Source of the DNA: Selaginella moellendorffii
Taxonomy: Eukaryota > Plantae > Lycopodiophyta
Assembly: GCF_000143415.4 (NCBI RefSeq)
Contig: NW_003314474.1
Span: forward strand, 1 to 45,011
Length of the DNA stretch: 45,011 nt
Direction of reading: 5' to 3'
The position numbers and the translations under genes were made by a program. The notes under the pieces are model-generated. The model did no database searches. It was given only the letters and a program-made list of their open reading frames with translations, and had not been told where the DNA came from. Positions 1 through 34,054 of this stretch are shown here, one piece after another (positions within the stretch are counted from its first letter, which is position 1; every line of letters begins with the position of its first letter).

Positions 1-2210
1 GTCGTTAGACTTATATGGGTTTTCCCATGTTAGCATATCGACTCTATCTCTGTCAATATCATTTGGTTATGTTTAATCTATGGTGTTGGATTTCATGGAG
101 TCTTGGATGTGGTGAATCACTTCTTGATGATGTGTTATCTGTAATTGAGTTTTGCTGAAGAACTAGTCTCGGATATTGAGTAAGTATCTTTGACTTTGGT
201 TAGCTTGGTTGCTAGAAAGTTTTGGGTGGTGATTCACTCATGCTTTCTTCTAGCTTTGTTATGGTGTTGATGGCATTGAAGTGATGCCTTGTCATTGATA
301 TTATTGATGGTTGAGATTTGAGTGAAATGAGATGTCTTTCTTTAGGATTGATATTAAGTTTCATTAGTCTCAATGAAGATAGTATTGATGATTTGGTTAT
401 GGCTTTGTGTTATTGGCATTCGTGCATTTGCTAGTTAGCAATTGTATTGACGTTCAAATGAATTGAGTAGCAAGTTGAGTTAATTGTGTTCTAGACAAGA
501 TTATTTAGTACGGGTTAAGCTTTGGCTTTTCCTTGAAAAATGATTCAGTCGTGGACTATGCTAACTCTACAAGCAGAAGAGTTAGTGGTTAATATTGGAA
601 CATTTGAATCCTTATTAGATTTGAGTTGGAATATATCGATCATTGATAATTCTTCTTGTGCTTGTTATGAAGTGCATTACGTCTTGCTATAGATGGATTC
701 ATGGAGGGTCGTTTGGTGATCACTTGTTGAACATAGCTTCATTATGCTTAATTTTTGAATTGATGTAGATATGCTCTTTATTAGCTTTCGCATTATGAAG
801 TTTAGCTTATGGATGTGTTGAGGAGGATATTGTGTGTTATACCATGATTTCTTCTTTAGTATTGATATTAGCTTATACAAGACTTATGATCATTGTTATG
901 CAAGACTTGGCTATAGGCTTCTTCAAACTTTTGGTTCTTTGAGTTTCCATGCTCATTGTTCCATTTATTAAAAGTTGTTGGGGAAGGCATTTTGACTCAT
1001 TAGCTTCAATGTTGAAGTTGGCTTTTGCATCTAGTAATCATTGGTGATAATTGACTATCATCTAGGATAGTTGATTATCCTTGTCAAAAGGTTTTGCTTG
1101 ATTGTTATTGATATGGAATGAGCTGCTGTTCTTTAGGGTGGTGGATTCTTTCTTCAACAATGATTATGCATCTCTTCATTGATGGGATGATTGATGATCT
1201 TTCATGATGGTTAGTTGTTCACTTTGATAGCTTATGGCTTTTTGCAATACCACATATTGTTTATAGTTTGCTTTAGATTGGTCTCTTGGGTTTGAGACAT
1301 TAGTAGGATGTTGCTGACATTTGCTTGAGCAACTCTAGTTCCTTGGTAGTGTTGATCGGGATCTATTCAAATTGGCTCATCTGATAGTTGGCATAAATGA
1401 GTATCTGTTGGTTTACCATATTCATTCTATTTCGTTGATTGTTGCTCGAGTTTGTTCTGATAGATTGGAATGTTATTTCCTTTGGGTGATACATTCGCAA
1501 GCATTTTGCTTGTCAATCAATGATACCTTGTGTTCTTTGAGTTATCTTCAATAAATTGTTTAGCATACTGTCTACAATCGTCAGTAGTTAAGTTTTATCA
1601 TTGAGTTTTTTTGATGATGCGTTGGCTATTGAATTTTGTTGGATGGTGAATCCTATGTTTTCCAATTATGATGATCTTGGTGGTTCCTCTACTATAATAC
1701 TGGTTTATCAGATGATAACTTACTTGGAATACTTTTTTGTTCTAATATAAGATATATTCACTGATAATTAAGTCTCTACGATATCATTGTCTATGACTTT
1801 GATATTGTCCATCTATTGATCTTTAAACTTGGGCCAGTATAGGCAGACTGGCTAATTGCCTATTTATAGTAGTCTATCTAAACCTTATCGACGGGTTTGG
1901 TTTCTTTGCTCAGGAAGGTTGGGGCCTCTGGCTTCTCTCTCTATGTCCTTGCAAGTAGGGCGTATCACACTTTTGTAAGCTGGGTGACTCCTAGAGCAGT
2001 AAGGGTGGCTGACTTCGTTGGTCATTTCCTTGTTGGCGATGGCCAGAAGGTGTCTGAATTGGTAGCACATCCGCGTTAGACACAGAGGTTACCCCTAACT
2101 CATTTAAGTTGGTGCATTTCTCACATAGTGTGAGTACCGTGAACTTTTTCTGGACTCAAGTATGCGGTATTCTAGACTCAAGTATGCATCAATGAGGACG
2201 TCAATCTTCC
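1..2210 (+). mobile_element. Degenerate 3' internal region of an LTR retrotransposon (upstream of PPT/3' LTR)
   Basis: Lies directly upstream of a polypurine tract and a TG-starting LTR. Strong strand skew (T/G-rich on +), stop-riddled, CpG-poor. No protein domain recognisable. Confidence 0.35.
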
Positions 2211-2211
2211 C

Positions 2212-2224
2212 AAGGGGGGGAGAG
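2212..2224 (+). other. Polypurine tract (PPT) of LTR retrotransposon
   Basis: AAGGGGGGGAGAG immediately followed by TGTCGCG, the classic Ty3/gypsy PPT-LTR junction. Confidence 0.6.
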
Positions 2225-3456
2225 TGTCGCGAATGTGACTTCAGATATCAAAAGTTACCTGTCGATCAGTCCTTACGGACACTCTTACCTTATTGCCACG
2301 ATGGCAGGAGGTCGGTATTGTTGGACCCTTTATCAGTCCCTCTTGTGCTAGTGGAGTTAACTAAGCATTTCGAGTGTACTTAGATCGGACGAGCATAAGG
2401 ATGGAATTCCTACGTGTTATTAGCTAAGCATACTTAGCCCGGTAAGGAGTTCCCGTCTCGTTATGTCTTGCACTAGCTAGTTACAAGAACCTCGCATATT
2501 GAGATTAATCCCTCAATATTGCTGGATGATAGCTTACCGTGTCTGCCAAACACCTTCGCTATCATGCCCTTTGTGTTAGTCTCAATTCGGTCCTAAATGC
2601 TATTTATGGAAAGTGTCCAGATTTGCTCATTTGGCATATCTACGGAATGTAGAGATTGTTCTGAACACAACGGTGTTCGTCCCATGTCCAAATTCGCAAT
2701 CTAAGGACATTCCATATTTAGTAAGTTTGGAGCTTGTCTTAGAGACTAACTCCTGATACTAAGGGAGGCTTGGGGTGAAATCCCAAAGCGTGTGTTCCTC
2801 AACGGGGGGGGGGGGCTATGGGAGGCTCCAAATGTATAGTAGGGATAGTGGGGTAGGTCGGGCATGGCCGACCAACCTGAGGCATAGCTTAACTCTTGCT
2901 TGCGTGCTTGTCCTTGTTTTATGTCTAGCTTGGGTTTAAACCCAAGTTCCATTCCATGCTAGCTGGTGGGGTACCCATGTCCTTGTGTTAGGCCACCAGT
3001 ATGCCAAAATAGTGCCAGGCTCCGTTTGGCTCCGTTTTGCGTGCTGGTCCTGGCATTGGGATGTTGGTTGCTCCAAGACTGTTCCAAGTTGCTCTGGGCT
3101 CCTATCCTTTCACTCCTTGGGTTGTATGCTCGGGAGTTGCTCTGTGGTTCGGTTTCGTCACTCCTTGGCTCCATGCTTGGGAGTTTGGCACCGTTTCTTC
3201 GTTCAGTGGCCCAAGGCCTTGAACCTTGGGTTCCACACCACGTTCCTTTGGACACGTGGCATGTGACACGTGGCATCTGTCACGTGGCACAAAGAGGGTT
3301 TAGGTTCCACTTCGTGGTGTTATCCTATGGTAAATCACCATAGGATAAAAGGTCAAAACGACATGCACTACATTTTATCCCCATTTATCCCCCAAGGTTC
3401 TAAAGATTTACATTGATAATATATCTAAATCTCATTCTATGATCGTATGTGCTATA
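2225..3456 (+). mobile_element. LTR (~1.2 kb), probably the 3' LTR of a Ty3/gypsy element
   Basis: Starts TGT after the PPT and ends GTGCTATA (decayed ...GCTACA). Its last ~85 nt (ATTTATCCCCCAAGGTTC...GCTA) resemble the end of the solo LTR at 8701-8784. Contains internal TTGGCTCC-type short repeats (~3010-3200). Confidence 0.55.
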
Positions 3457-4199
3457 TGAAAAATGTGATAGAAGTGAGATAAGTGGAAAAAAGTTACTTA
3501 AACAACTGTAATAAGTGATAGACAAAAGTGTAGCAGATGGAAAATAGAATAGTGTATGATTGCAAGTAGATTAGAGTAATGGTGATGGGGTTTGAATTCA
3601 TCTAATATAAAAAAGAACTTAAAAACTATAGAAGAAAAGCTAAGAGATGAACAAGGCTTTCAAATGATTAGAGTTGAGGCCATATAGAGACTGAAAACCT
3701 ACTACTATAAGAATACAAGTCTTGAAAAGGAAAGTAAAAAAAAGTGAAAGAAAACAAAGATAAACAAAGAAAACAAAAAAGAGAGAAAAGAAGTTATCAT
3801 AAGAGAAGTTAGTAGTGATGTCAGGAGCTGTTGGGTGTAGTTGTGTTACAGCTCACTCCAGGTGAATGAAGGGCATCTTGAAAGATGCCAAAGATGCCAA
3901 TAAAGATGGTTCCAAAGTTGGATGTTGCATTGACTTATTAAAGTGAATTGTTGTGACCTTGAGTAAAAACCTGAAACTTTGCTTATTGTCATGAGGTTGA
4001 GAGCTCTTGTATGCTGGGACAAAATGCCTCCAAAGTCTAGAATGTAGCCTAAGTTGTCATGAATTTAGTGGACAAGTTCATGTATATATCATAATCACTA
4101 AGAGTCATGATTTAGAGGTTTAAGCAAGTTGGTGTGATCTTTAGGTGTTGGAAAGGCTGAAGAAGAATACTAAGTTGCTATAAGAATAAATCTACCACT

Positions 4200-5720
4200 A
4201 TTGCCACCTTTTATAAACAGCAACTACAGGAGTTTGTTGTATATATACATCTCATTTGAAAGAGGCCTCTAAAAGGTCTAGAGAAGGTGTTGCAATTGAA
4301 AAAAAACTTTAAATCATTGTTTATGTGTTTATGTCTATAAAGTATTTGTGCTTTAAAGAATTTCCTATAAAGGCAAAGTAAGTACAACATCATAAACAAC
4401 ATGGTGGATATGATCTCCAAGAGAAAACGAAATATTCCATTCCATAGGCTTAAACACCATTGACAATGCAAATGCCTATATGGCTGCACATATGTGGGTT
4501 GGTCTTGACACTCCACATGCTCGGAAGCTCTCTCGTCTGTTCTCAAGGTTGTGTTCAAGTTGGCATCACTAGTCTCAATAAAGGATAGCAAGTGAGTGCT
4601 GGAAATAACCATATTTAACACCTCTAGTTGCATAAAGGGAGCTTGTAGAGTGTCTTTTATAATCCCCCACCTTGATTTGAGGCAGAAAAGTCACTACCCA
4701 AACTCACCATTGCATTTTTACTCTCCCCCTCATTCTCATGCATTTGCAAATCTTGATTGGATCTTGTGTTTCTTGGAGCCTAAGCAAATGCAATCACTCA
4801 CAATAGATAGAAGAGGAGTCCAAGGGTGAAACTATCTAGACATGATGAAAAAGATCAATTATATTAGCATCTCAAACTTTGACATGGTGTCATTGTTGGG
4901 ACTTGTTGGTTAAAGTGGAGGAGTTTGGCTAGGCTAATGTCAATTGATACACTTCCTAGGATGCTAGAGGCTATCCCTTTACATTGAGGATAGTAACTTG
5001 CTCGTGCCTCTTCCAATTTGCATTTGGCCATGTTCAAAGTCAAAAGAGCACAAAGTTGTATCTAAACATGGCCAACTAAGGATCACTAATAGCACCTATA
5101 AGAATGCTTTCAAAGCAGTATAGTCCACAATCAGAAAGTTCACTGTAGAGTCATGGCCATGAACCAAGATAGGTACATCTTGACAAATCCCCATTAGAGC
5201 AATTGTATAATTGGCAAAGGTTTTCAATATGACATTTGAATACTCCTTGATCTATAGAATTACTTGCTAAGCCACTATCAAGGAGAGGATGTTGAGTCTG
5301 CAAGAGTCTCTATATCAGTGCTTGCAATCAATGTTTGCAATCATTGCCAAGATGAGGAAGGTATTAGGCTCTGTAGCTACTATAGCATTGACAGTGAGGA
5401 TAGGGCCCATATTAGGGGCTATCGATGAGGCCTTTCCACCAAGAACACATACTAACCTCAAGTTGTTGAAGAAGACATAAGAATTGGTAGCAAAGATCAT
5501 CAATTGTTGTTATGATAGATGTTGTTATGATTTGCTCTATGAGATGACTTTGGCCACTATTTGGCATAAAAGGAGACCCTTGGCTGCATCCTTGTAAACC
5601 TTGATCCACATAGATATAGTAAAACCATGCCAAAGTGAAAGATAACTTGCATGTTATGAGAGATGGAGCCAAAGGAGCTAGTGGAGCTAATGTTGAGGTA
5701 GATTCCAACTCTTGCACAGC
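4200..5720 (-). pseudogene. Heavily decayed retrotransposon gag/aspartic-protease-like relic
   Basis: Minus-strand translation gives ...YRDSCRLNIL...GICQDVPILVHG...VNFLIVD...VILSWP (retropepsin-like spacing) and a downstream QPYR motif typical of the gypsy RT N-terminus. Many stops. Confidence 0.3.
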
Positions 5721-6416
5721 TATTTTATGCTTCTTTTAAGCTTTTATTTCTTTGTTATAGCAAGGCAATGAGAATGGTGTTTACTAAACATTTGCCACCA
5801 ATAACAACTAGGGCTTATTTAAGTGAAGCAGCTATTAGTATCAAGTTGATGGTGCTAAGGTTGCTACTAGATATGTTGAGGTAATTGGGGTTGAAGTTCT
5901 AGATGCAATTTCCAACACTTTATAGTGTGTATCTATAACAATTTCTATCCAACTTTTGTTAGAGTTTTTGACTCTAGTTGCATATGTAAAGACTTTTCTA
6001 AAAGATTTAAACCGCTTGTATAGGATTTGTTGGATTGCTCTATTTGGTAAGAATATTGTATATGTGTTCATTTATTGCAGATATGCATGCAACTCTTGAA
6101 ATGGAAAAGCAAAACTATGTTGATGATGCTAAAACCTTTAGATGAGTAAATCAAAAGGAGGAAACTCCTACTAAAGATGCTATAAAAGAGGTTGAGGCTA
6201 AGTTGGAAGAAAAAGATCTTAGGCTAAAGGTTGCACTATAGTGTGCAATTCAAAATATTAGGATTTAGAATTTGCAAAGGAAGTTCACAAATTAAAGGAG
6301 AATAAGAAGAGGAAGAAAGAAGCTAAAGTAACTAAATTAGTTAAAACTAAGTAGCCAAACTCCTCTTCAAATTTTAAGGATGTTAAAGTTTTATAACTAG
6401 CCTCAATTGCATGACT

Positions 6417-6516
6417 NNNNNNNNNNNNNNNNNNNNNNNNNNNNNNNNNNNNNNNNNNNNNNNNNNNNNNNNNNNNNNNNNNNNNNNNNNNNNNNNNNNN
6501 NNNNNNNNNNNNNNNN
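6417..6516. other. Assembly gap (100 N)
   Basis: Run of N. Confidence 0.99.
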
Positions 6517-6900
6517 ATGATGAATGTTTGGAGCTATTTTTTGGAAGGTTTAAGTTCACTTTGTTGCAATGAGATTTTGAAGTTTAAGCCAAAAACATAT
6601 ATAAAGTGTGAGGAGTTTGCACAACAAGTTACCTTTAGTCACTTATTCATAAAATAGTATCAACAACCATATATTACTACCTTAGATAAAAATAAGAATT
6701 TCAAGAATAAACAAGGTGAATAGAAATAGAGGGTGGAGGAGAAATTCCACTATAGAAGCTCATAAAAAATGGTCAATAAAAGTGGTGATTGGTAACCACT
6801 AATAGCTTTTTCTAATCTTAAGCCCTCTATTCCTCCTAATAGGTACAAGTAGTAGCAATCTATGAAACCTACTCCTAGTGTAATAAGTAGTGTGGTGTAT

Positions 6901-6942
6901 TGTTTCTTTTGTGGAGAGGCATGAAATATAATTAGCCATTGA
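6901..6942 (+). pseudogene. Decayed gag CCHC zinc knuckle
   Basis: CFFCGEA*NIISH* fits the C-X2-C-X4-H-X4-C spacing with mutated positions. Confidence 0.45.
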
Positions 6943-7057
6943 GACTTATGTGGAGCAACTTTTCCAAGGTTGGTCTAGAATTACTAAGGCAATAGGCAAA
7001 GCTTAGTATAGGTATTGGTATGATAAGGATTAACATTGCCAAGATGAAACTTATCAA

Positions 7058-7460
7058 GTGGGAGATTAGGTATAGTTATCCTTATAAAGCTTGAATATTA
7101 AAGGATTTTTATCTCAAAAGTTGTTACAACAACCTCTATAACATATTAGTCCCAGAAGATATGTTGGGTGCTAAAGCAAATTGATAATATATTTTATCAA
7201 TTGGATCTTTCAAAAGAGATGTTAAGTATTCATGATATATATCATATCAATTTACTAGCCCCATATGAGGATTCTGGCCACTCTATGGAAGTTTGTCCAG
7301 TTCCAGAAATTGTTGATAGGGAACTTAAGTACGAAGTAAAAGCTATTTTAGGTATGTATTAGATTAAGTGTTAGAAATATCTTGTTAAATGGAAAGGTTA
7401 CCCAATATGTGAATGTACTTGGGAGCCTCTTAGTAATCCTACATATGCTCATGAGCCTAT
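7058..7460 (+). mobile_element. Chromovirus (Ty3/gypsy) integrase C-terminus: GPY/F-like region plus chromodomain, pseudogenised
   Basis: YQLDLS...IHDIYHINLLAPY followed by YEVKAILG...KYLVKWKGYP..ECTWEP (group I chromodomain motif), with in-frame stops. Confidence 0.85.
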
Positions 7461-7469
7461 TGGCAAAGA

Positions 7470-8190
7470 ATTAAGATATCTTTCTGAAAGATTTACCACC
7501 AAAGTTACCTTCTAGCTGTGAAGTTGATATTGTTCTAGGTTTTAAGCCACCCACAAAAGCTCTATACTATTTAAATATTAAGGAGATGGTTGAACTCAAG
7601 AAGCAATTTATAGAACTTCTTAATAAAAGTCATATCCAACTAAGGCTTTTTTTATGAAAAAGGATAGTACTATGAGGATGTATATCAATTATTAGGCTCT
7701 GAACAAAATCATGGCTAAAAATAGTTATCCTTTTCCTCACATTAATGACTTACTCTTGAAAACTAAGTATTTTATGTAACTTAATTTGCGGTCTAAGTAT
7801 CATCAAATATGGATGGTAGATTAAGATGTGGAGAAAACAATCTTTAAAACTCCTTATAGATCCTATGAATTCCTCATTATGTATATAATGCTCCAGCTAC
7901 ATTCAATATATTTATGGATAGAATATTTAGAAATTATTTAACACATTTTATTGTCCTATATACTGATGATGCTTTAGTATTCAAAGAAATGTTAAAAGCA
8001 TTTGAAACACTTGTGGTTAGTGTTTAAAAAGCTACGAGAAAACAAACTATATACTAAGGAAAATATATATGCTTTTGGTCAATTGCATTAAAACTTTCTT
8101 GGGTATATAGTATGTAATCAAGGTGGATAAAAAAAAGGTAGAAGTGGTGAGGTCTTAAGAAGTTCTAAATTACTATATTAGATGTTTATT
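7470..8190 (+). mobile_element. Ty3/gypsy reverse transcriptase relic
   Basis: KKDSTMRMYINY*ALNK, YPFPHINDLL, LNLRSKYHQI, KTIFKTP..SYEF, NAPATF, YTDD (YxDD), FLGYIV. Frameshifts and stops. Confidence 0.9.
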
Positions 8191-8192
8191 TA

Positions 8193-8784
8193 TGTAGCAC
8201 ATCCTATCTCTCTCTCCCTTTAAGCCAATTGGAAAAAGGGTAATGGTTTGATAAAAGAATCTTTAGTGGCTATTTTATCACTATTAAAATACACTTACCC
8301 CCCCTTTAGAGACTATTGACTAACAACCCTTATTGAGATAAAGGGAATCAACACCTTCATTTCCACATTGAATCTACCAATTCTTCCATTGTATACATCA
8401 GTTATTCTATGTGAGGCAATTAATCATCCACCCGTATTGTAATTCTATAGTAACTACCTTCATTTGGGATGCTCTATAGAAGAGGAAGGACGTATGTATG
8501 GATGCCTAATACACATGATTTCAAATTTAAAAGTAGGAATATACCTTGTTTAAGGGTATATTATATTTTAAATAGCCATTAATCAATGAGAATCGAATTT
8601 GTGCCATTTGCTTTGATACTATATGTAATGCATTATATTTCTCTCCTTTTAAGTCAATTAGAAAAAGGGCAATTGCTTGATGAGAGAGCCTTTAGTGGCT
8701 ATTTATCCACATTTATCCCCCAAGGTTCCAAGGAGCCACGATGATAATATATTTAAATTTCATCCCATGATCACATGCGCTACA
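8193..8784 (+). mobile_element. Solo LTR with 5-bp target-site duplication
   Basis: Termini TGTAGCAC...GCGCTACA (inverted, TG..CA). Flanks ATTTA/GTTTA (4/5 match). Internal direct repeat ~8210-8282 vs ~8640-8710. Truncates the RT relic. Confidence 0.75.
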
Positions 8785-11700
8785 GTTTATTTCACAGTTT
8801 AACAAGATATTATTATAAGTTTGGTTTACAATTTTGAAAGTATTGCCTTTTCTATTGACTTAGTTAATAAAGGGTAATATATTGATTCATTAGACACTAG
8901 TTTGCTAATGTACTGGTCTATAGTTGAAGAAGATCTTGACTTTGGTTCATGTTTTCAAGGGGGATGGTCCAAAGTTGAATTGAGCTCACGAGTTGAGCTC
9001 AACTCGACACAAGTCAATATAGTTAACTAAAAGTTTTATAAAGGAAATTTAAATTGAAGAAATGATTGAAACATGTAAGTAGTTGAGTCAAAAGTTTCTA
9101 CTAGAATGAGTTATTTAAAAATGAGAACCTATCTTTTCTAAAGCTATATTATTTTATAAGACTACTATTACAATTTAATTACATATTTTGACTAATTTTA
9201 TAGCTGTCATATATTTACATACTTTCCCTTCATTTTAAATTTTTTTCTAGGGTTCTTGAGAAGATGAGAAGCAAGGAAAACAACAAACTTTTAAGTAAGA
9301 GTTGTAGTTTAAAAATATGTGAGAATGTTAACTTTATTTCACTATTAAAATCTCTATATTAAACTCTTGGTCCTTATTACCCATTTGGAAATGTGGAGAC
9401 AATTGTCACTATTGATAAAAATGCTTTTATTACTTACGAAACAATAGCCTAAAGCAAAAGAAATGAAGAATTGAATAGCATGGTGTAGAGCATCAACAAA
9501 TCTACTCCATAAAACTTTTCATAGCACTTTTAATTTATATAATACTTTATATAAAAATCTCCATTTGCTTGATTATATTCCAATCCTCCCATATGAGAAA
9601 AATAAGGTATATTTTCATAGTGAGCCCCCACTAAGAGTTTTTGGGAGTTGTTTGTGAATAATAATAATAGAAATCAAAATCTTTCGAAAGACTCAAAAGT
9701 AATTATATTAAAAAATCAAGTCTATCTACATTTTCAAGACTGAAAAATATTCTCGCATAAAAGAATGCCAAAGTGCCAACATGTTCTGCCATTATAATGT
9801 GGTCTATATTTCTCTAGAAAGGTGGTATATGTATAAATAAAAATATGGAGTATGTTATCATCAAAATGATAAAGTATTTATATACATGATAATCTAGAAT
9901 TCTAGAAGCTCTTATACTTATAAGCAAGTTATGATTATGAAGCCTAATTTCCAAAACTGACATTTCAAGAATTTGAGTATTGTTAATGTCATAATAAATA
10001 AATCTCATTCCCAAGACAAAACTTAATATATAAACTACTAAGAAAAGTTATAGTTGCCATAGTTCTTTTGTTGAGTTCCTTGCAAAGCTAAAAGGTTTAT
10101 ATACAAATGGCTGAAAGGTTTATATAGGAATGGTTGAAAGGGAAGTCATTACTATTCATAATTAGCCCCTTAACATTTCATATCAATTTCCACCTCCATC
10201 TCTAGGTTCTACCAACATTTCACTTTCACCTCTATATAATGATCCTCTTTCTGCTAGGGGCTTTAGTGAAGCTAAACTAGAGCTCCCTACATATGAAATT
10301 CTAGAACTTTTTACTAAAGAGGGATTGCTTTCAGCACTTCAAAAATAATATCACATGTTTTTGCAAGATCTTGCTCCTAACATGATAGGACAACTTGAAA
10401 GCACAAAAAGTTATTATATTTGATGGCTAATATGTTACTATTTTTTGGGTAGGACAAATGGCTTTATAAGTTTACAAACTTTTCTTGAGCATTGTAACAA
10501 TTGCCCAACAAACTGATCTAAAAAATATGCATAGGTGGATATACAATAAATTCAAGAACAAATTACAGACACATATGCATTATCACTTCATGGTGAAGAA
10601 TAACATCTCCTTGGGAAACATTACATTTGCTAGTGCAAAATATAGAGTTTTAGGTCACTCTATAGTGAAATATAAAATTTAGGATTGCTTTACTATACTA
10701 TAGTATTGGTATATATATCTATATATATACATATATAAATGAGATGATACTAGTTGTAGGTAATATATCTTATTCTATAGTGGAATATCCACTATAAAAC
10801 TATTATAATAAACAAGGTATTAGAAGTATAGTGTTCCATTTGGGAATGACTCGAAAGAATAAATATATAGACTCTTTTATTGGCTTTGAAATCAACAAAA
10901 CAGTCATCCTTTTTTAATAGGAACTAGTGAAAACATTGAGAGTTTGATTGTAAAGTGCTCAATATGCCTTTTGGTTTTGGGTCAGAAATTCATTTTTATG
11001 GGCTTGAATAGTTTTTATTGAGCACTACTATGATTGCGGCATAAATGGTGTTAACACGTCACATATAATTATTTATAAGATATTGAAAGATGAGATGATA
11101 ACATATATATGTGATAGAGTGATGGTGATATGCAAGAATGACAATTTGAAATTATGAAATTTGACATTGATACTATCACTGATATTTGACACTATCACAA
11201 GCATCTGACATTGTTACTGATATTTGACATATAACAAGCTTTTCATTTCATGTAAGGATGCAATTAACTTTCTTCTGCCTCATCATCAATATATTAATTC
11301 TTTTTATGCCTCCTCCTATATTGGTATTGTGGAGAAGATTCATCTTGCATTTTTTGAGCTATGGCTTTTACATAGTTGAGGAGACTTCCAAAGCCTCAAA
11401 TTCTAAAAACTTCATATAACTGTGATCTATAAAATAGAACTAAATATTTATTGAAATCTTAATAAATATAATTTACCTCCTTAAGGTTGGAGGCAGCTCA
11501 CAAAATCCTTTATGCTAACATTAAGAAATGATGTTCTTCAATAGCAAACACTGATCTACTAGAGTCACATGCTACCTTCACTATAAATCTACCATTTACT
11601 GTGTAATCAATCACAACACCATCTGAAATATAAGTTACTATGAGAAAAACAAATAAAAAACATTCAACTTTAGCCCAACATGCATTAAGATAGGGATTTT

Positions 11701-13499
11701 TGATTGCATGACATGAATATGAGCAATAAGTCACATTTCATTGCATCATCAATGGAGTTTAAAATCAGTATACTAGAAATGTGCTATAAATCTACTCATC
11801 AACAAGGTTAGGTATAATGTTAATAGAACTATTGTACCTAGGCAAAACAAGTGCCGCATGATTGCTATCACGAAACCCGTCATGTGTGTTTCTATAAAAG
11901 ATATGATAAGACCACATCATAATTTGGAAAATAAAAAATTTTATAAATTAGATAAAAATATGAAATATCTACTCACCTTTTCAAGCTTCCCTTGGACTCC
12001 CTTAGTATCAATGCCAACAGGATCAATGATGACCGGGAAGAAAAAGACTTGAAACAAACTTTTGCTACACATATTATAAGCTCATAAATTTAGTTGGGGT
12101 CATTTGGTAGAAGAAAGATGATATAGCTAACTTTGAGTATAAGTGTTTATGACAAAAGAAATACATTACGTATGTGGTCAAGTGTGAAAAATTTCTAGTC
12201 CTTGACTTTCCCATCAATATCTAAAAGACTGTTTGGAAAGTCAAAGAGAATGAAGTCCATAATTGGGAGTAAAAGCCTTTATATCTTTTAGCACCAATGG
12301 TTGAACTAATGTTGTATGTCCATATTCATGTCATCTTCCATGAAAAATATCAATATTCTATTGTAGGAGCCAATGAAGACACTTATAGTGCCTTGGTGTG
12401 TTAGTGGAGAAATATGACCAACCTATAGAAGAGCTAAATGAATAAAAAAGCAAGGAATAATATACTACTATCATATGGTGTATTATTGATAAGAGTTTCT
12501 CTGACTCCTTGTCATGAGCATCTCATTATGCTGGAATGAAATTACTACTAATAGTCATTGCTACAAAAAAACATGTGTTATCACCTTTGCTTTGTAAAAG
12601 TCATTTTTGCTTACCTCGAGGTCAATGTAATATTTTGCAAACAACTTGATCATCGTTATTTTCTAGTGGAACCTGGTTTGGATCTTAAATGTCTAATGGT
12701 GGAATTGGAACTTGAGAAAGTGTGTAATTAAGGCATTGACATCGCTAGCACTTATGTTAGTGGAAGTGGCATTGTTATTTCGAGTGATGGTGGAATGTGA
12801 GCTTAATCTAGAACTTCCTCATCCTCCTCTCCATCATTATTTACATCATTATTATTGCTAGCATTGATAACTTCCTCTTGGTTTAGTGTAGGGTCTCCTT
12901 CCAACTTTTAAAAGCATTTTACTTTCCGTGCCTTTAGAACTCTTGTAAACATTGTTGGGTACATTCTTCCATTCTTTACACCTTTTGCAATAAGTCAAGT
13001 GCAAACTAGTACCTTAAATAGCATGCCTCTATATCAAAGATATCTGTAAACAATATATATTTAGAAAAGATTTTAGAAATTATATTATATCTATAAGCTG
13101 TACATTATATGAAATAAGGCTGACCATATTGGCAATTATAAATTGTTGTGTTTGTAGAGTTCTTTAGCAGTGACCCCTCTTTGATCCCTTTTAATAATGT
13201 GTTGACATAGGTGTTGAAGGACATGAATGTACTATCTGGATATGAGACATAAATCCCTAAGCCCCAAAGTGGAGCAGAAAGGGTGTCACATAGTAGTGGT
13301 CAAAGTGGAAGTCCAACAAGTGTAACATGTTTGGATTAAAGGCTCTAACTAGGAAAGTCAACAATGGGAGTGGAACTCCGAACGAAGTGCTCAAAGGATG
13401 AGCACGAAGAAATCGGTGAATGAGTCTCTATATGGGGACACAAGAAGGACTAACACATAGCAAGTATTGTAACACATGGAAGTGTTAGGAATGATTCTG

Positions 13500-13860
13500 A
13501 GAAAGAGTCTGGGATGGAGTTTGATATGGACCCAAGATGGAATTTGAGATGGAGTCCAAGATAGAGTCTGATATGGATTCAAAATGTGAAGTCCGATATA
13601 GATCCAAGATGGAGTTCGAGATGGACTCGAGATGGACCCAAGATGGAGTCTGAGATGGACCCGAGATGGAGTCCAAGGTCAAATCTGAGATGGACCTGAG
13701 ATGGAGTCCGAGGTTGAGGCCGAAAAAGAGATTGAGACCGAGACCAAAACTAAGACCAAGATCGAGACCGAGACTGAGACCAAGACTGAGTCCGAGACCA
13801 AGCCTGAGATGGAGTTTGAGACTGAGTTTGAGTCCAAGTCTGAGTCCAAGAGTGAAAGCC
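13500..13860. repeat. Degenerate minisatellite (GAGATGGA[G/C]TCC-type ~12-mers grading into GAGACC/GAGACT 6-mers)
   Basis: Visible tandem periodicity. It explains the low-complexity ORFs in several frames. Confidence 0.85.
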
Positions 13861-14589
13861 CAAAGCAATCGTCTCCCAAACCGAGGGTTTAATGAGCTCT
13901 AAAAGTATAGTAGGGAGAGGACTCCAGTTGAGCTAATTTGGCTAGGAAAGGCTAGTGTGACCAAGGAAGGCTATACTCATATGGTGGGTGATGATATAAT
14001 CACTAAGGAGTCCAAAGCTAGAGTGAATACGAATGGACAAGTGGGGTAACTTGGTGAAGTGTTCAAGAGCCAACTTTAGCTACCCTGGGAGATCAAATGG
14101 TCGATTCTTCCAATCCAAGTGTGGGTAGCATTACTTACTTGGATACTTCATGTGGCTCATCAGAACCTCGCTCTAGCCACATGGCTAAGGTACCCAAAGG
14201 TGGAAGGTGGAGAGAGTACCACAAGGCTTGCATAAGGCCATAATGTTCCAAAATGTTGTCCTAAAGTTTTAGATTGTGGAAAGGAAGAGGAGTAGTCCTC
14301 TTATGTAATGATTAAGGATGCATTCATATGGCAAGGAAGTCCCAGAGGTCAATGGGACGTAGTGGTTGGGCCTTCAAGCCCTAACCTAGTAATAGTGTTG
14401 GCAAACACAATCGGGGACGGAGAAAGACTTGGTGGGGATTGAAAAAGAGATGTTGGGAAGGCTATTCCCTATGTCTTTAGGCATCCTAAAGATGCTAAAA
14501 AGTGGTTTTGGGATGACTACTCATGCATGGATGGCCTAGTCTTTGAGAGACAAGACTATAACACGGGTGGTTTAGGACTACTAAGACAA

Positions 14590-14827
14590 GGGTAAATAGA
14601 TATAACCTTACCGTAACAAACTAATTTATTTGTAATACCTTTGGGGGGTTAATAATAGAATTGGATATGTGGGGCACTTGGACCAAGTGCAAAGGCTGAG
14701 TGGCATAAATGCCATTCATGGGGTTAACAAATCTCTAAATTTGGAATAGGTTGTGAGTAAGACTCTTCCAAGTGGTTAGAAATGTGGTCAAGTAACTAAA
14801 GTAGAATGGAAAATTTTGTTGTTTACA
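14590..14827 (+). mobile_element. LTR 3' end, copy 1, followed by a degenerate tRNA-Met PBS
   Basis: Shares GTGGCATAAATGCCATT...GTTGTGAGT...CCAAGTGGT...CTAAAGTAGAATG with copies 2 and 3. Ends TTACA, followed by ATT-TGGTATTGAAG (cf. PBS TGGTATCAGAGC). Confidence 0.55.
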
Positions 14828-15663
14828 ATTTGGTATTGAAGTTGTTCTTTAGTTTGACTTTTATTGGTAGTCGAGTATATCACCACTCATAATTGTATTA
14901 GAAGGCCCTAGAAATGGGCCTATCCTCGAGGAGTAGCATGTTAAGATAGCATAACTCTCCACTTTAGTTCATACGTGAATATATTGGCAATGTAGTGGAT
15001 AAAAATAAGCCAATAAGGGAACAATTTTGGGATCTTGAGAACAATAAAAGGTTTTCCTTAAAGAGTTAAGGATGTGATCCAGATAAGTGTTTGATTTAGC
15101 AAATTGACTAATGTGGTTGTTGTAAACAACTATAGTTGGGATCACAGGAAGGATGAAAACTCCAAAACAATAAAAAAGTCATAGGATTATCCTCATATAG
15201 TTGAGGATGGTGCTTATGAATTTGAGACGAGAATTAATGACCATGGGAGGTTAAATACAGATAAAAACATAAGTCCTTGAAACGGTAGCCAAGGCTACTT
15301 TTAATAAATACTAGAACAACTTAATGGATTGGGAGTGTACTTAAAGGATGAATCGGTATTCTCATCATTTAGACGGATAGTCTTAAGGGCCAAAGGTAGC
15401 CCACAGGGAACAAAGAATAATTAAGTGTCGAAATAACACTTGCAAAGATGGTTTTTATAAATAGGACATGAATAATAAATTATATTCTAATAAGCTAGCA
15501 TCTCAAAAGTAGCCGTAAGACTAGAACCTTATAAATTATCAAATTAATAAAGTCCAAAAGCTGGATGGCTTAGTCGAGTTGAGGGATGGTCCTAAAATAT
15601 TGGTGAAATCTTTTAGATTGAGGTGGGTTGTACTTTACAAAGTATTGTGAGGATCATAAGATC

Positions 15664-15850
15664 TATAAGCAACTAATTTTCCATTCTACTTTAGTCACTT
15701 AACCACACCTTCGACCACTTGGAGGAGCCTCACTCACAACCTCCATAAATCTTACTCCGGACTTGGGGACTTATTAGCTTTATGAATGGCATTTATGCCA
15801 CTCAACCTTTGCACTTAATCCAAGTGCTTTATGTATCTTATTCTATGATT
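15664..15850 (-). mobile_element. LTR 3' end, copy 2 (inverted orientation)
   Basis: Reverse complement of the 14640-14827 / 16660-16847 repeat. Confidence 0.65.
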
Positions 15851-16599
15851 GATAAACATATATATACATTACCCCAGTCCCAAAGGGATCAAAATAACAT
15901 TAAGAGTGCACTTTTAGATAAATAAGTGAAACTATAAGCATGAACGCCCAATGCTGCACTTAGGTCGTCTGCCTCTCAAGTGACTCCATTGCAAGACTTG
16001 AAGCCACTTGCTATACTCCATAATCTGCGAGACTTGCCATGAAGTGCTCCACCACTAACGTGCTTCTGCTGCCAAACTAGTGTCCAAACGTGATAAAACT
16101 CCAACTTGTAGCTCCATATGAAGTGTAAACATCCTCTAACTCAAGGCTAGAGTGTGCTAGCCTCTCATATGAGACAAGTGCACTAGTTCATCTTCAATAA
16201 AGTCCTACCCTTGTAATAGGGACTAAAGAAAGGGCATGAACCTCCTTTGAGCCTAAGTAGGTTTTAAGCTTATGAGTTCATGAGTTGAGCTCACAACTTC
16301 TCAAACACAAGGAAAATATTGGTTTGTCCTGAACCAACATCTTTTCATTTTTCAAATTTTGATTTAATCTATATTTCCAAGTAAATTCGACCAATAAAAT
16401 ACAAAAATAAATATAGATCAAAACACTAAAAGCAATCTAGAAACGACAATGTGTGGCAATAGGTTGAGCAATAGAAGATAAATTCAAACCTGTATCAACT
16501 AATATAGAGAGAATGCAAAGCTTGCTTGATAGATGTGATGGTTGACCTTGTTTTTTTTAACATATTAGTAGGGTTTAAAGTTTGGGTTAATAAAGCCAG

Positions 16600-16847
16600 G
16601 GTAAATGGATATAGCCTTAGTGTAATAGGTTGATATATCGATAGTACATTTGGGGGGTTGATCATGGGATTGGATATGTGAAGCATTTGCACCAAGTGTA
16701 AAGACTAAGTGGCATAAATGCCATTTATAAGGTTAGTAAGTCCCTAAGTCTGGAATAAAACTTATGGAGGTTGTGAGTGAAACTTCTCCAAGTGGTTAGA
16801 GATGTGGTTAAATGACTAAAGTAGAATGAAAAATTTAGTCGCTTACA
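16600..16847 (+). mobile_element. LTR 3' end, copy 3
   Basis: Direct repeat of 14590-14827, ending GCTTACA. Confidence 0.65.
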
Positions 16848-19380
16848 CTAAATCATCACTAATGTGCGGTGCCATGAACTTCTCACCTTCATCTATAGTT
16901 TGTGTGATGTAAATAGCCTTTCTCATTATATTCTTAAATACTTTTAGGAATTCTTTTTCTTTGTTCATCAAGAAAATATTGAGAAACTCTAGAGTTTCTA
17001 TTTGTTACTTATATAGAAGCTTCATTTTTGTGATATTGTAAATCATGTCATTTAGAGTTTTGTTCATTGCAAAATAAACATATATGTGATTGAGAAAAAT
17101 AGAGCATACAATAAGAAACTTATATTCATGAATGGAAATTTCTACTATAGTCTCTAGCCACTTTGAAAACTTTGCATGTTAGTTTTTTACTTTGAAGATT
17201 TTGCATATTGAATTTTGTGCAATTTGTATAAACTCAACTGAGAGCTCTTCCCAACTCTTCTCCGGATGCACAAGTTTATAAGCATTTTGCTTGACCTTCA
17301 TCAAAGGCTAGAAGTCTGTATAGGGGATTTTTAAATTATAAGAATCTCATTTGGAGAATAATAAATGGGGAATAATAAAGGATATTTAGTTTAACATTAT
17401 TTAAGTGTATTTTAGAGTAATAAATCTAACCACTGCCATCTGTTATGTGGACATAGGTCTTTTTTATATCAATAGTGTGTACTTACCATAATATCCAAAG
17501 TACTTTGCAAAGTTGAGTGTATTTCAAAGATCATATATCAGCATTTATAATTGCAAGCTGGGTGTTCATGCACTTATTTTATATCTCACTTGTTAGTGGC
17601 TCTTTACTTGAAATGACATTGCTGCTAAGAAGTAGAAAGAAACTAATATATATTGTCAAAAGGCTGGAAAAGCATTGCTAGGCTGATATTTGCACTATGA
17701 GGTCTTTTTAATATCTAGGATGGTATGGCTTTGATAAAAAGGATTAGATAAAAATTCCTTGTTTAGGTTCATCTTAAATATTTCTTGGATCAAAACACTA
17801 ATTATAAAATAATTACAGAATTTAAGTTAAGCAGAGTTAAGAATTTCTCATAAAAAAGAGCTCACTGAAGATGTTAAAAGCTAAAACATAGAAAGTAAGA
17901 AATGAGTTTATAAGTAGCATAGTCTATAGTCATACAATCACTATAATTACCATAGTATATTGTATATCCATTATTCTGATTATACATTTAAAATAATTAG
18001 TGTTTAACTAGAAGAAAATCCCATGTTAATTGACTGAATCCCTATATTATATATTTAGTTTATGTGGCCTTTAGGGAGTGAATATATGCTTATAGGAATG
18101 AGGTTTTTATATGCTTTTACTATGTTCTAAGTTTTCACTTGATTTAATAAAATACATTACAGTTTAGTATATTTTACAGTTGCTGTTCTCAGGGTCTTTA
18201 AGGATTTTGTTTTTTAATTTTTTTATAGTTATTATTAAATTTCTTGGATATAGGTTTTAAAAAACTTATTTAATAGTGAAATTATTTAATATGTTATTTT
18301 TATTATATATAATTTGAGAGTTTTATTTAATGGATTCATAAGAAAGAAACTCAACAGTAATATGATTTATATGCTGATAGCAACCTATAAATGACCAATC
18401 ACATTTTGTTACATATTTTGCTAAACCTGGAAATACTATAAGTTGGTATTGTACCAGATTTATAAGAAAATTAAAATATCAAGGATAGTATTTGGATCAA
18501 TTTATTCTTGAAATAACAAATCAAATTTATATATAAAAATATTTACTTTTCTTCCATACCTATTATAATAAACATTTAGACAACAACTCATAAGTTTTTC
18601 CCAATTGTTATTTGTACAATCAACATCAACACCCTCAGTCTTATAAGTTAAACAAAGATTTATAATAAGAAATATTACAGTAGTAAATATATAAATCTAA
18701 ATTCATACATACTTTTTTATTTAGTTATGAACTTGTGTTTCTTATATAAATAAATAAATTACTAGTTAATGATTGTAAATGAATAAATAAATATAATACA
18801 GCTGACTTGCAAGCTCCTCAGCCTCTTCCCAGGAAAGATCATCCTTGCCATCAGCAGCTGCCTCTTCCAGGAATGTTTTCTGCTTCACAAGCTCCATGAC
18901 GACTGGAGGAGAAAATCTGTGTTTTTATAAATAAAATTTAACATTTTTGTTATATATATATATATATAGTTAAGTTTAGGTATCTTCTTTTACTATACTT
19001 TATTTTGACTAAGCTAATCAATAAAGTCAGATGAAAGCCACTTCGTCATTCCCTTACATGTACTCAAGTTGAGTGCGTATGCACACTCATAAGTGACAAA
19101 AAATGTCAGAAGTAAACTTTAGTCCAGAAGAAATCTGTACTCAAGGAAGAAAATCTGGATCAATGGCAAGTCTACTTACGGGCTATGTATGTGAGCAAAG
19201 GGTCTCAGTTTCGTTTTCATTCGTGACAACTTAAAACTCTGGCAAGTCCTTGAGTGTTTAGAAGCGTTTCTATGTTTCAGCAGAATCATAATTTGCACCT
19301 TCCCAGAAGTTTGATACTGAAACCTTTTTTTTTATTTTGTTCTCTTGAGCGATGAGAGAAAACAGATATCATGGTAAATG

Positions 19381-20223
19381 CTATGCCTCCGCTTCTAACT
19401 TTCTCAGAAACGTGGAGCTCAGTTTCTCCGCGCCTCCATCTAGCATGAACAGATCCACGACTTCAACCTGCTGACAAATCTCGTCATGGAAAACCCAGAA
19501 AAGATTTGTACTAGCCTTGAGTTGGGAAAGGCCTCGTTCAGCTCGTTTCTTATTGACAGCAAGTCCTCCGCCCAGAGTCTCTTGACTGAATACCGAGAAA
19601 ACACAAACGCAAAGACACAAAAAAGTACAGTTTTACGAGATATAACACAAAACGAAAGCGTCGTCTTGTACCTTACAACAATGGCCTCGAGTGCCTCGTC
19701 GACTATGGATGGACCATACGGGTCATGTATTGGCTCAGTTTGGACTTCTAGATCCGGCTTCACAGACTGCAAAGAGGACGAAAAACACGAAAGAAAAAAC
19801 AAACGAAGTTATCCATGAGAAATGTAGCAAGAAGACTGGACCTTGATAAACTCCTTGACTGCATTGCTCCTCTTCTCGTAAGGCTCGATCAAATGCGCGA
19901 ACTACCGCAAGAGCAAAACAAAAAAACAAAAAACAAAAAGATAGATTAAATAGCAGATGAGACGAGAGAAGAGAATGGAGTAAATCTTACCTCTTTGTTC
20001 TCTAGCATTGGCCCATCGCTGATCCCCACCACGACCCTCTCGCGCGCGAGCTCTGCCGCTGCCTTGGACAAAGACCCAAGCCCTGATCCGATTTCCACAC
20101 CACGGCTAGCAAAATTCGCTGGCTCACCTTCAAGAGCATCTTGTGGCCGCCGTGGAGCCGATCAAACGTGCCGCCCAGAACCACGGCAGCATACGCGCCA
20201 TCCTTCGTGACGGCGAGCACCAT
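19381..20223 (-). CDS. COAD: Phosphopantetheine adenylyltransferase (plant PPAT/CoaD), 6 exons
   Basis: Spliced product contains [14 protein letters not shown] (HxGH), [63 protein letters not shown]. Confidence 0.93.
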
Positions 20224-32391: not shown

Positions 32392-33935
32392 TTATTGCTG
32401 CTGATGGCCTGGAAAAAAGAAAAAGAAAAATAAAAGAGTCACGACACAAACAAACAATGAATCAGGCGGTGAATTCCAAATAGTTACCCTTGCGCCGTTT
32501 CTTCTTCTCGGGCCTCGTAAAAATATCCTCCACGCGCTCTACAATCTTTCGCTTTTTACTGCTCGCCTTCGGCTTCTTCCGGAGATCCTCCGCTACGAAA
32601 TCGCCCTGGAGACAGTCAAACCGATGCGGAAATGAGGGATTTGCGAGAGGAATGGGGAGGAGTTTCACGTACGGGAAGGTGAACTGATTTCTCGTGGTTA
32701 TCTCTGACGTGCCTGTAAGCAAAGGACTTTCCGCACTCTGGGTTGGAACATGGATACGGTCTGAATTTCAGGTGGGCAACCTTGATATGCTTTCGAAGGT
32801 TATTTTCCTGCGAGACACGTGACGAAAGATGAGCAGGCAAACAATGTGGTCATAAAACAAAAAGACCTGTAGATAGGTGAGCGGGCAGTCCGGATAGGGA
32901 CATTTTATACGCTCCCGATTCAAGAGTCCCGCTTTGTCATGAGTCGCATAGTGCCTCTTGATTTTCGACCGCATGCACTGCTTGCCACACACTTCGCAGA
33001 ACACGTACTTGTGAGCGTTCCTTGTGTGCTCGGCCAAGTCCGAAGGGTGATCAAAACGCTCGTTGCAACCCGGCTCGGAACAGACTATATCAACGTAGAT
33101 TTCTCCTGCTGCAGCAAAGAACACATGGTTAGACCGAACCAAACATATACAGGTACCTCATACTGAGAGCATATCAAGTCTAGAAAAATCGGAGAGGTCA
33201 CCCATCCCAAAACCCTGGATTGCCTCTCACCTCCTATCCGGGACTTCTTGAGGCAGTCACCCGCCTCAATACTACTCTGGAGTAGCTTTTCCACTTCGGA
33301 GTTCCATCGAGATCCGGTGTTGACGTCGAAGCTCACCTAAGCATTACATAAACAAGCCTCACCATGGCATGTCTCCTCATGATACCGAAGCTGTGATGGA
33401 TACCGGAAAGCTTTGCCACATTTCTCCTCCTTGCAAGCGTGCTCCTTTGCTTCCTCCAAGCCTTTGTCTCGGTGGCGCTGGAGCGTTCCTTTCTTTTCGT
33501 GAAGCTTCGTGTGTCGCTTTAAGTCGTGTAAAATCCTGGTGGTGAAAATGCATCCCGGCCGCGAGCAGGCATGGACCTTTCCATCGTGTTTGTCATTTAT
33601 GTGACGCTTGAGGTGATTCTCCCACTTGTATTTGGCGCCGCAAGAATCGACAGGGCAGCAAAATTTCCTCTGCGTGAAAGGATCTCGATCAGTCGGAGGA
33701 GAGAGAGATAGAATTCTACCTCGTTCGAGTGACAGAGGAGGTGCTGCCTGAGCAAGGAAGGCTTCCCCAGCTTCTTTCCACACTCACGGCACTCGTATTT
33801 CTTCTCTTCTTGATCGCTGCTGCTCGCGCTGGCGCTGCCTGTCTCGACATCCTCGCTCTCATACCTGGTGCTCTCCCAATCCTCGCTCCCATAGCTGCTA
33901 TCGGATTGATCAGAATCGCTGGAGCTGGTGTCCAT
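32392..33935 (-). CDS. TFIIIA: Transcription factor IIIA (C2H2 zinc-finger array, 8 fingers readable)
   Basis: Spliced fingers include CSEPGC, CEVCGK..IKRH, CGKSFAYRHVRDNHEK and a C-terminal GDFV motif, as in plant TFIIIA. Introns 33670-33719, 33109-33362 and 32808-32866, plus a likely final intron 32409-32487 (alternatively the stop is at 32462). Confidence 0.9.
33239..33336 (-). ncRNA. 5S rRNA mimic (P5SM-like cis-regulatory RNA) in the TFIIIA intron
   Basis: Minus strand CACCGGATCTCGATGGAACTCCGAAGTG...AGAGTAGTATTGAGGCGGGTGACTGCCTCAAGAAGTCC aligns to plant 5S rRNA CACCGGATCCCATCAGAACTCCGCAGTT...AGAGTAGTACTAGGATGGGTGACCTCCTGGGAAGTCC, with helices preserved. Confidence 0.9.
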
Positions 33936-34054
33936 CGCGCGTCGCGCAGCCTTTCTTGGAGCCCTAAAACCTAAACCTAAAATACATTGTCCCGCTCATA
34001 TTTGAAAAATTCTCTTGCCATAGCGAAGAGCAAAAGCTAGGGTTTTTAGCAGCG
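33936..34054. promoter_or_regulatory. 119-bp bidirectional promoter (TFIIIA / ASHH3-like) with telo-box-like motifs
   Basis: Divergent ATGs at 33935 and 34055. CCCTAAAACCTAAACCTAAA (33962-33981) and TAGGGTTT (34038-34045). Confidence 0.55.

Follow-up and report, generated by a model that had tools for sequence, protein, structure and literature searches.

A displaced 5S rRNA mimic within a nested cluster of splice sites in the TFIIIA gene of Selaginella moellendorffii, a candidate variant of the P5SM switch

Introduction

The transcription factor IIIA (TFIIIA) gene of the spikemoss Selaginella moellendorffii lies on the minus strand of contig NW_003314474.1 (positions 1 to 45,011, the 45,011-nucleotide (nt) stretch of DNA that we call the window) and contains, in the intron that follows its fourth zinc finger, an element resembling 5S ribosomal RNA (rRNA). 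The question raised by this locus is how such an element might act on splicing from that position. A first-pass annotation made from the sequence had proposed that the mimic is intronic and governs either a neighboring poison microexon of 23 nt or a choice of donor site, with a four-finger truncation or nonsense-mediated decay (NMD) as the outcome. We consider it somewhat probable that the locus holds the Selaginella version of the P5SM switch of land plants, relocated to a place after finger 4 and embedded in a nested cluster of splice sites, and that its main unproductive RNAs keep the mimic.

The TFIIIA suicide exon called P5SM was reportedly described in 2009 both by Hammond, Wachter and Breaker and by Fu et al., and it is now well known as a textbook structured RNA controlling plant splicing through feedback among TFIIIA, 5S rRNA and the ribosomal protein L5. 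The exon carries a 5S rRNA mimic (PMC3378873, PMC3355732, PMC6164485) and has been presented as a conserved third exon from moss to flowering plants (PMC3355732, PMC6164485). For Arabidopsis, both the mechanism involving L5 and NMD of the P5SM-containing RNA have been described (PMC3378873, PMC3355732).

Results

All coordinates given for parts of the gene refer to the minus strand of the window and are collected in Table 1. The gene encodes a C2H2 zinc-finger protein with eight fingers, which we identify as TFIIIA. A HMMER search with exon 2 returned one strong match (E 4.5e-68), to residues 73–174 of a 317-amino-acid (aa) protein whose 90% cluster consists of five Selaginella moellendorffii proteins: ACI25365.1 (B6DCI8), which is named 'transcription factor IIIA'; XP_024523610.1 (318 aa); two partial JGI models with EFJ accessions; and XP_024540073.1 (182 aa), which derives from the 1.74-Mb scaffold GL377605.1 and represents the other haplotype. 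The exon 2 translation is identical to residues 73–174 of both ACI25365.1 and XP_024523610.1, and the next-best relatives are plant TFIIIA proteins from Phoenix, Magnolia, Amborella and Adiantum, at ~40% identity. The cDNA behind ACI25365.1, deposited around 2008, was presumably cloned by the group behind Fu et al. 2009.

These protein searches used single exons and the deposited proteins. A word search with exon 2 plus the tail gave no match, although the sole representative of the cluster (317 aa) exceeds the length range of that search; one with XP_024540073.1 recovered only the same five-protein cluster, and the protein collection searched contained no further TFIIIA member from Selaginella or other lycophytes or from RNA assemblies (Logan). 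Alignment also revealed that the nonseed plants Selaginella, Marchantia, Physcomitrium and Nothoceros lack the first finger of seed-plant TFIIIA and thus have eight fingers versus nine, so that our finger numbers are one lower than those used in the angiosperm literature.

An end-to-end alignment to the Rfam 5S_rRNA model places the core element within the 254-nt intron after finger 4, and the sequence supports its identification as a diverged 5S rRNA mimic. The best-preserved parts are helix III with loop C (GAACUCCGAAGU), loop E (AGUAGUA...GAAGUCC) and helices IV–V; helix I is shrunk to about 4 base pairs and is nearly absent. A consensus structure computed with RNAalifold together with four bryophyte mimics contains 5S-like helices II–V, with compensatory changes at 11 pairs. 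Relative to the bryophyte mimics, the Selaginella sequence carries a 49-nt insertion that largely equals a 51-nt GT..AG unit immediately downstream of the core.

Two further features of the mimic's surroundings were noted. A second 5S-like fragment, GGGATGGGTGACCTCTCC, lies at 33208–33191 downstream of the mimic and inside the Selaginella-specific insertion; it is nearer in sequence to helix IV of plant 5S rRNA than is the mimic's own helix IV. In addition, a 7-nt direct repeat, AGGTGAG, at 33338–33332 and 33232–33226 flanks the core mimic, and each copy supplies a strong donor. The repeat could be a target-site duplication left by an insertion, or its copies could be selected decoy donors.

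The position of the element sets Selaginella apart. In the other plants examined, a 5S-like element occupies the intron before the finger that starts KPF/RPF-C-P. This is the case in Marchantia polymorpha and Physcomitrium patens, and in Calypogeia fissa the canonical TFIIIA intron holds two mimics in tandem (Table 1). The element also stands directly upstream of that finger in a Physcomitrium RNA-assembly contig (L003), and the Ginkgo model Gb_35789 reads through an element at the canonical place. This canonical site aligns with Selaginella intron 1, which carries no mimic. The Selaginella mimic is located three fingers farther downstream, behind finger 4 (which corresponds to finger 5 of seed plants), at a position where bryophytes have an ordinary intron. 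Its displacement by three fingers from the canonical site indicates a relocated or reacquired variant rather than a strict member of the 'third exon' class (PMC3355732, PMC6164485).

The comparison yielded some separate observations on the bryophyte loci. In the Physcomitrium contig L003, the mimic-bearing exon ends GGGAG/GTTCGC (at about position 208, corresponding to 2486/2487 of the genomic locus L004), inside helix IV of the mimic, so lineages differ in where the P5SM exon has its 5′ splice site. The first 209 nt of L003 are only 93% identical to the genomic locus and may represent a paralogue or another strain. Calypogeia fissa has several TFIIIA paralogues or fragments (CAM6125277.1 and four others).

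To describe the splicing options within the 254-nt intron, every GT and AG was enumerated, and the strength of each was judged against the gene's own introns. Downstream of the constitutive donor, D1, a 26-nt spacer continues directly from the exon 2 reading frame, and read-through would append GEACLCNA before the TAG that ends it. Frame 0 of the intron has no other stop than this TAG (33339–33337), so all forms that continue beyond D1 terminate at it; by translation, such transcripts would stop after four fingers.

Two strong donors bracket the mimic. D2 lies at its 5′ edge, and positions +5 to +9 of this donor form the 5′ strand of helix II in both the Rfam alignment and the consensus fold. 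D3, which was missing from the list of the first-pass annotation, lies directly 3′ of the helix I strand; Calypogeia has a donor-like CAG/GTGCAA at the equivalent place after its mimic. With D2 in the helix II strand and D3 right after the helix I strand, a folded mimic would bring both donors to its base.

The remainder of the intron can be parsed into three parts. Of the internal AGs, only A2, the acceptor that closes the 51-nt unit, is preceded by a strong pyrimidine tract (12 of 14 positions). It is followed by the 23-nt segment and then by D4, which is at least as strong as the constitutive donors GTAGAA and GTCTTT of this gene and opens a 48-nt GT..AG unit that ends at the NAGNAG acceptor, A3. 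The 254 nt can therefore be read as the spacer plus mimic (132 nt) followed by two mini-introns, of 51 and then 48 nt, with the 23-nt segment between them. Both mini-introns have branch-like motifs 18–20 nt upstream of their AG, and both match the gene's other introns in size (50, 59 and 67 nt). In 2,000 dinucleotide shuffles of the intron body, a microexon-like configuration of acceptor and donor arose in 3%, and at least two strong internal donors (WG/GTRAG) arose in 0.5%; these figures are indicative only, given that the criteria were set after seeing the sequence and that shuffling mixes its purine-rich and T-rich parts.

The motifs proposed in the first-pass annotation were all recovered by this enumeration, and translation reproduced their consequences. 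The 23-nt segment is flanked by a usable-looking acceptor ending at 33180 and a usable-looking donor at 33156, followed by the 48-nt unit, and its inclusion shifts the frame to DLICSQYE-QEKSTLI and a stop at 33087–33085. Only the combination of D1–A2 with D4–A3 produces this peptide. The Rfam alignment agrees with the placement of the alternative donor TAG/GTGAGC at the 5′ edge of the mimic, and translation past D1 gives GEACLCNA and the TAG. The four-finger truncation also holds, as every alternative choice leads to a premature stop after four fingers. Finally, it had been suggested that the mimic, unlike P5SM, is not itself a cassette exon. We concur: only 26 nt lie between the mimic and D1, which leaves no room for it to be an independent cassette exon. 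To be a true cassette exon it would need an upstream GT..AG intron of 26 nt, a reading that we rejected because such an intron is too short.

The deposited proteins provide annotation-level information on which junctions are used. The distal acceptor of A3 (33106) gives ETCH/GEIY, found in ACI25365.1 and in the JGI/EFJ models, and the proximal acceptor (33109) gives ETCH-A-GEIY, found in XP_024523610.1. Both forms of the predicted in-frame NAGNAG are thus represented among deposited proteins, at the level of annotation or cDNA, and these proteins show that the productive mRNA joins D1 to A3. The 182-aa protein XP_024540073.1 ends ...ETCHGEACLYTS, which is the exact translation of the haplotype-B spacer up to its TAG; from this end point it follows that the RefSeq model treats sequence beyond D1 as exonic. 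Such an end is compatible with intron retention or with splicing from D2, D3 or D4, but not with the microexon peptide, which is absent from the deposited proteins of the Selaginella cluster. At the annotation level only, the proteins of 317 and 318 aa from which the element is removed thus stand against a 182-aa form ending at the spacer TAG. Of the two options offered by the first-pass annotation, donor choice gains from this model, which ends at the very TAG that the alternative donor would append, whereas the governed microexon loses ground, both through the missing peptide and through the overlooked D3.

Comparison of the two haplotypes points to a larger unit than the 23-nt segment (Table 1). 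The 180-nt block from 33336 to 33157 has 1 difference, whereas the remaining intronic DNA has 14 in 250 nt (Fisher p = 0.006), and the ends of the block coincide with an AG (33338–33337) and with D4. Its size is close to that of the Arabidopsis P5SM exon, 175 nt (PMC3378873). The likely Marchantia exon (2520–2691) has 172 nt, and the Ginkgo read-through amounts to 61 aa. Given this resemblance in size to a canonical P5SM exon, an intronic mimic with a poisonous microexon is only one of several possible parses of the intron. The 23-nt segment is most likely the tail of an old mimic exon (33336–33157) and not a stand-alone poison microexon.

Table 1 Features of the Selaginella TFIIIA gene and positions of mimics in bryophytes
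Feature	Coordinates	Strand	Size or sequence	Haplotype differences	Remarks
Exon 1	33935–33720	−			ATG at 33935
Intron 1	33719–33670	−	50 nt		Plain, no mimic
Exon 2	33669–33363	−			Fingers 2–4; phase 1 end, ...HEETCH plus one base
Intron after finger 4	33362–33109	−	254 nt		Carries the 5S rRNA mimic
Donor D1	GT at 33362–33361	−	ATG/GTGAGG		Constitutive
Spacer	33362–33337	−	26 nt	3 (33347, 33344, 33342)	Downstream of D1; in-frame TAG at 33339–33337, kept in both haplotypes
Core 5S rRNA mimic	33341–33232	−			Rfam 5S_rRNA, end-to-end alignment
Core mimic, interval compared between haplotypes	33336–33231	−	106 nt	0
Donor D2	33339–33331, GT at 33336–33335	−	TAG/GTGAGC		Alternative; 5′ edge of mimic
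Donor D3	33233–33225, GT at 33230–33229	−	GAG/GTGAGA		Strong; directly 3′ of helix I strand
D3-to-A2 GT..AG unit	33230–33180	−	51 nt	1 (33223)	Branch-like GUGAC, A at 33198
Acceptor A2	33194–33180	−	CTCCGATTTTTCTAG/; also read as TTTTTCTAG/		Internal; AG ends at 33180
23-nt segment ('microexon')	33179–33157	−	ACTTGATATGCTCTCAGTATGAG	0 (expected 28% of the time, P = 0.28; uninformative)	Bounded by A2 and D4
Donor D4	GT at 33156	−	GAG/GTACCT
D4-to-A3 GT..AG unit	33156–33109	−	48 nt	5, including D4 position +5 (C/T)	Branch-like CTAAC at 33132–33128
Acceptor A3 (NAGNAG)	33111–33106	−	CAG/CAG		In frame; proximal 33109, distal 33106
Exon 3	33108 (or 33105)–32867	−			Fingers 5–7; holds the stop 33087–33085 of the microexon frame
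Introns 1, 3 and 4		−		2, 1 and 3
Marchantia polymorpha mimic	L002 2548–2671				59.9 bits
Physcomitrium patens mimic	L004 2406–2522				40.5 bits
Calypogeia fissa mimics	L005 1951–2069 and 2103–2221 (CBCUJL010000046.1)				86 and 88 bits; tandem pair in canonical TFIIIA intron

Discussion

The relocated P5SM switch that we favor would work as follows. The 5S rRNA mimic in the TFIIIA pre-mRNA would couple splicing to the supply of 5S rRNA and L5. When bound by L5 (uL18), as in Arabidopsis, the folded mimic would hide D2, which falls in helix II, and D3, which sits at the base of helix I, and D1 would then pair with A3 to give the productive mRNA. Otherwise, unproductive RNAs could arise by two routes, one retaining the whole 254 nt and the other using a downstream donor (D2 at 33336, D3 at 33230 or D4 at 33156), with the 51-nt and 48-nt mini-introns either spliced out or left in place. 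The main products of these routes would keep the mimic. The stop-bearing RNAs would be expected to enter NMD, given that they have exon junctions at a distance of more than 200 nt beyond the stop. The steps involving L5, NMD and the alternative sites are modeled on the Arabidopsis system and on the anatomy of the intron.

Likenesses to P5SM support this model. The gene is the same, TFIIIA; the Selaginella element keeps helix III with loop C and loop E; an mRNA that retains the element always acquires an in-frame premature stop; the conserved block of 180 nt compares with an exon of 175 nt; and feedback through L5 would be the expected logic. The differences are also clear. The Selaginella element follows finger 4, whereas the canonical position is kept in Marchantia, Calypogeia, Physcomitrium, Ginkgo and angiosperms. 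In place of a free cassette exon, Selaginella has a mimic 26 nt from the upstream donor, with a strong GTGAG donor on either side and two units resembling mini-introns behind it. This mimic is also far more diverged, with helix I almost lost, and for Selaginella both alternative splicing and L5 binding are predictions by analogy.

Several points weigh against our model. The mimic scores 21 bits (E 0.099) against a gathering score of 38 for Rfam 5S_rRNA and so falls below the family threshold. When the intron, the mimic and the hairpins of the spacer and the insertion were folded thermodynamically, z-scores were between −0.7 and +0.05, none of them significant, and neither the mimic nor the hairpins stood out. 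Unpaired probabilities did not clearly separate the donors. Conservation between haplotypes does not distinguish used from unused sites within the 180-nt block. XP_024540073.1 is a product of RefSeq annotation whose underlying transcript evidence is not visible. Finally, binding of L5 to so diverged a mimic is assumed by analogy with Arabidopsis.

Among the alternatives, the one that survives best concerns the origin of the element, not the function of its splice sites. The mimic might not be a moved P5SM at all but 5S-like DNA, for example from a 5S-bearing Cassandra-type retroelement, that was captured independently and later and was co-opted for the same feedback. The intron differs from those of all other plants examined, the 7-nt repeat flanking the core mimic could be a target-site duplication, and there is the second 5S-like fragment downstream. 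That fragment, however, lies outside the repeat-flanked unit, the strong divergence from 5S rRNA (21 bits) argues against recent insertion, and no other copy of the element occurs within the 45,011-nt window. We regard an independent capture as unlikely on balance; a recent insertion of Cassandra or 5S DNA was rejected as unlikely, given the low 5S score and the lack of further copies in the window.

The poison microexon itself, in which the mimic stays intronic and controls inclusion of 33179–33157 so that D1–A2 and D4–A3 splicing would yield a protein ending ...DLICSQYEQEKSTLI and NMD, appears improbable. Its components are well formed: A2 is the only strong internal acceptor, D4 at least equals the gene's constitutive donors in strength, the 48-nt unit downstream is typical of an intron, the configuration arose in only 3% of the shuffles, and the acceptor, the microexon and the donor core are identical in both haplotypes. 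To reach A2, however, D1 would have to bypass the strong donors D2 and D3. The distance from D3 to A2, 51 nt, is the preferred intron size in this gene, and A2 would pair more naturally with D3, which keeps the mimic in the mRNA. The predicted peptide occurs in no deposited protein, the sole truncated model ends at the spacer TAG, and the lack of differences within the 23 nt is uninformative (P = 0.28). Forms whose mRNA retains the mimic are therefore more likely than a stand-alone microexon, and the microexon idea by itself adds little at present.

A related scheme would give the lycophyte a topology unlike that of P5SM. An intronic, protein-bound three-way junction would mask the two flanking GTGAG donors and thereby decide between one long productive intron and a series of mini-introns that includes the 23-nt frame-shifting microexon, with the TFIIIA/L5 feedback rebuilt or reinvented in another intron. 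We doubt this scheme about as strongly as the microexon.

Arrangements of this general kind have precedents. In genes for autoregulated RNA-binding proteins and splicing factors, poison microexons and alternative 5′ splice sites likewise use a short frame-shifting segment or a downstream donor to place a premature stop before further exon junctions; the difference is that in Selaginella an rRNA mimic would mediate the regulation, exerted either by a ribosomal protein or by the protein that the gene itself encodes. The acceptor A3 is like other NAGNAG tandem acceptors in that its CAG/CAG is in frame and deposited proteins occur with and without the extra alanine, a minor one-residue variation that is unrelated to the poison mechanism.

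The least probable explanation, one that we hold to be very improbable, is that there is no regulated alternative splicing and that a relic mimic sits in a constitutively removed 254-nt intron with cryptic extra sites, the 182-aa model representing unspliced pre-mRNA in RNA-seq data: the low score of the mimic (21 bits versus 59.9 in Marchantia, 86–88 in Calypogeia and 40.5 in Physcomitrium), the unremarkable folding energies and the apparent retention of intron 4 in the full-length deposited proteins, which suggests that unspliced RNA may be common, are all consistent with a relic, but the 180-nt block is far better conserved than neighboring intronic DNA (p = 0.006), the 5S parts that bind L5 and TFIIIA (helix III with loop C, and loop E) are the best kept, chance would seldom produce so many strong donors (0.5%), and the empty canonical site would leave the gene with this as its only copy of a module that every other land plant examined has kept.

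If the relocated P5SM switch is real, the Selaginella arrangement is a moved and retopologized variant, possibly one that has been described before. The module would then be portable in nature and could act through masking of splice sites or retention of an intron rather than through exon definition. The spikemoss gene would offer a direct test of how the mimic acts and a second natural design for engineered splicing switches.

Other features of the locus

Telo-box or plant-telomere-like motifs (AAAACCCTAG; TTAGGTTTAGGTTTTAGGG) are located just upstream of the ATG, at 34037–34046 and 33962–33980 on the minus strand, and both are kept in the other haplotype. Such motifs are typical of genes for the plant translation apparatus. 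Positions 1–20,000 of the scaffold are AT-rich (29–43% GC versus ~50% in the genic half), contain no open reading frame of at least 150 aa and are probably repeat or transposon DNA.

The deposited TFIIIA proteins of 317 and 318 aa end ...VHLPVRETPPHSSRKSLISASV, which corresponds to read-through of a 67-nt GT..AG unit at 32672–32606 (minus strand) that has two 1-nt indels between haplotypes. Splicing out this unit would join an in-frame exon at 32605–32463 (minus strand) encoding GDFVAEDL...KKRK.... The two haplotypes share an identical sequence for this exon, whose product matches the C-terminal tail conserved in TFIIIA of bryophytes, Ginkgo and angiosperms; the deposited C terminus is probably an intron-retained or misannotated form.

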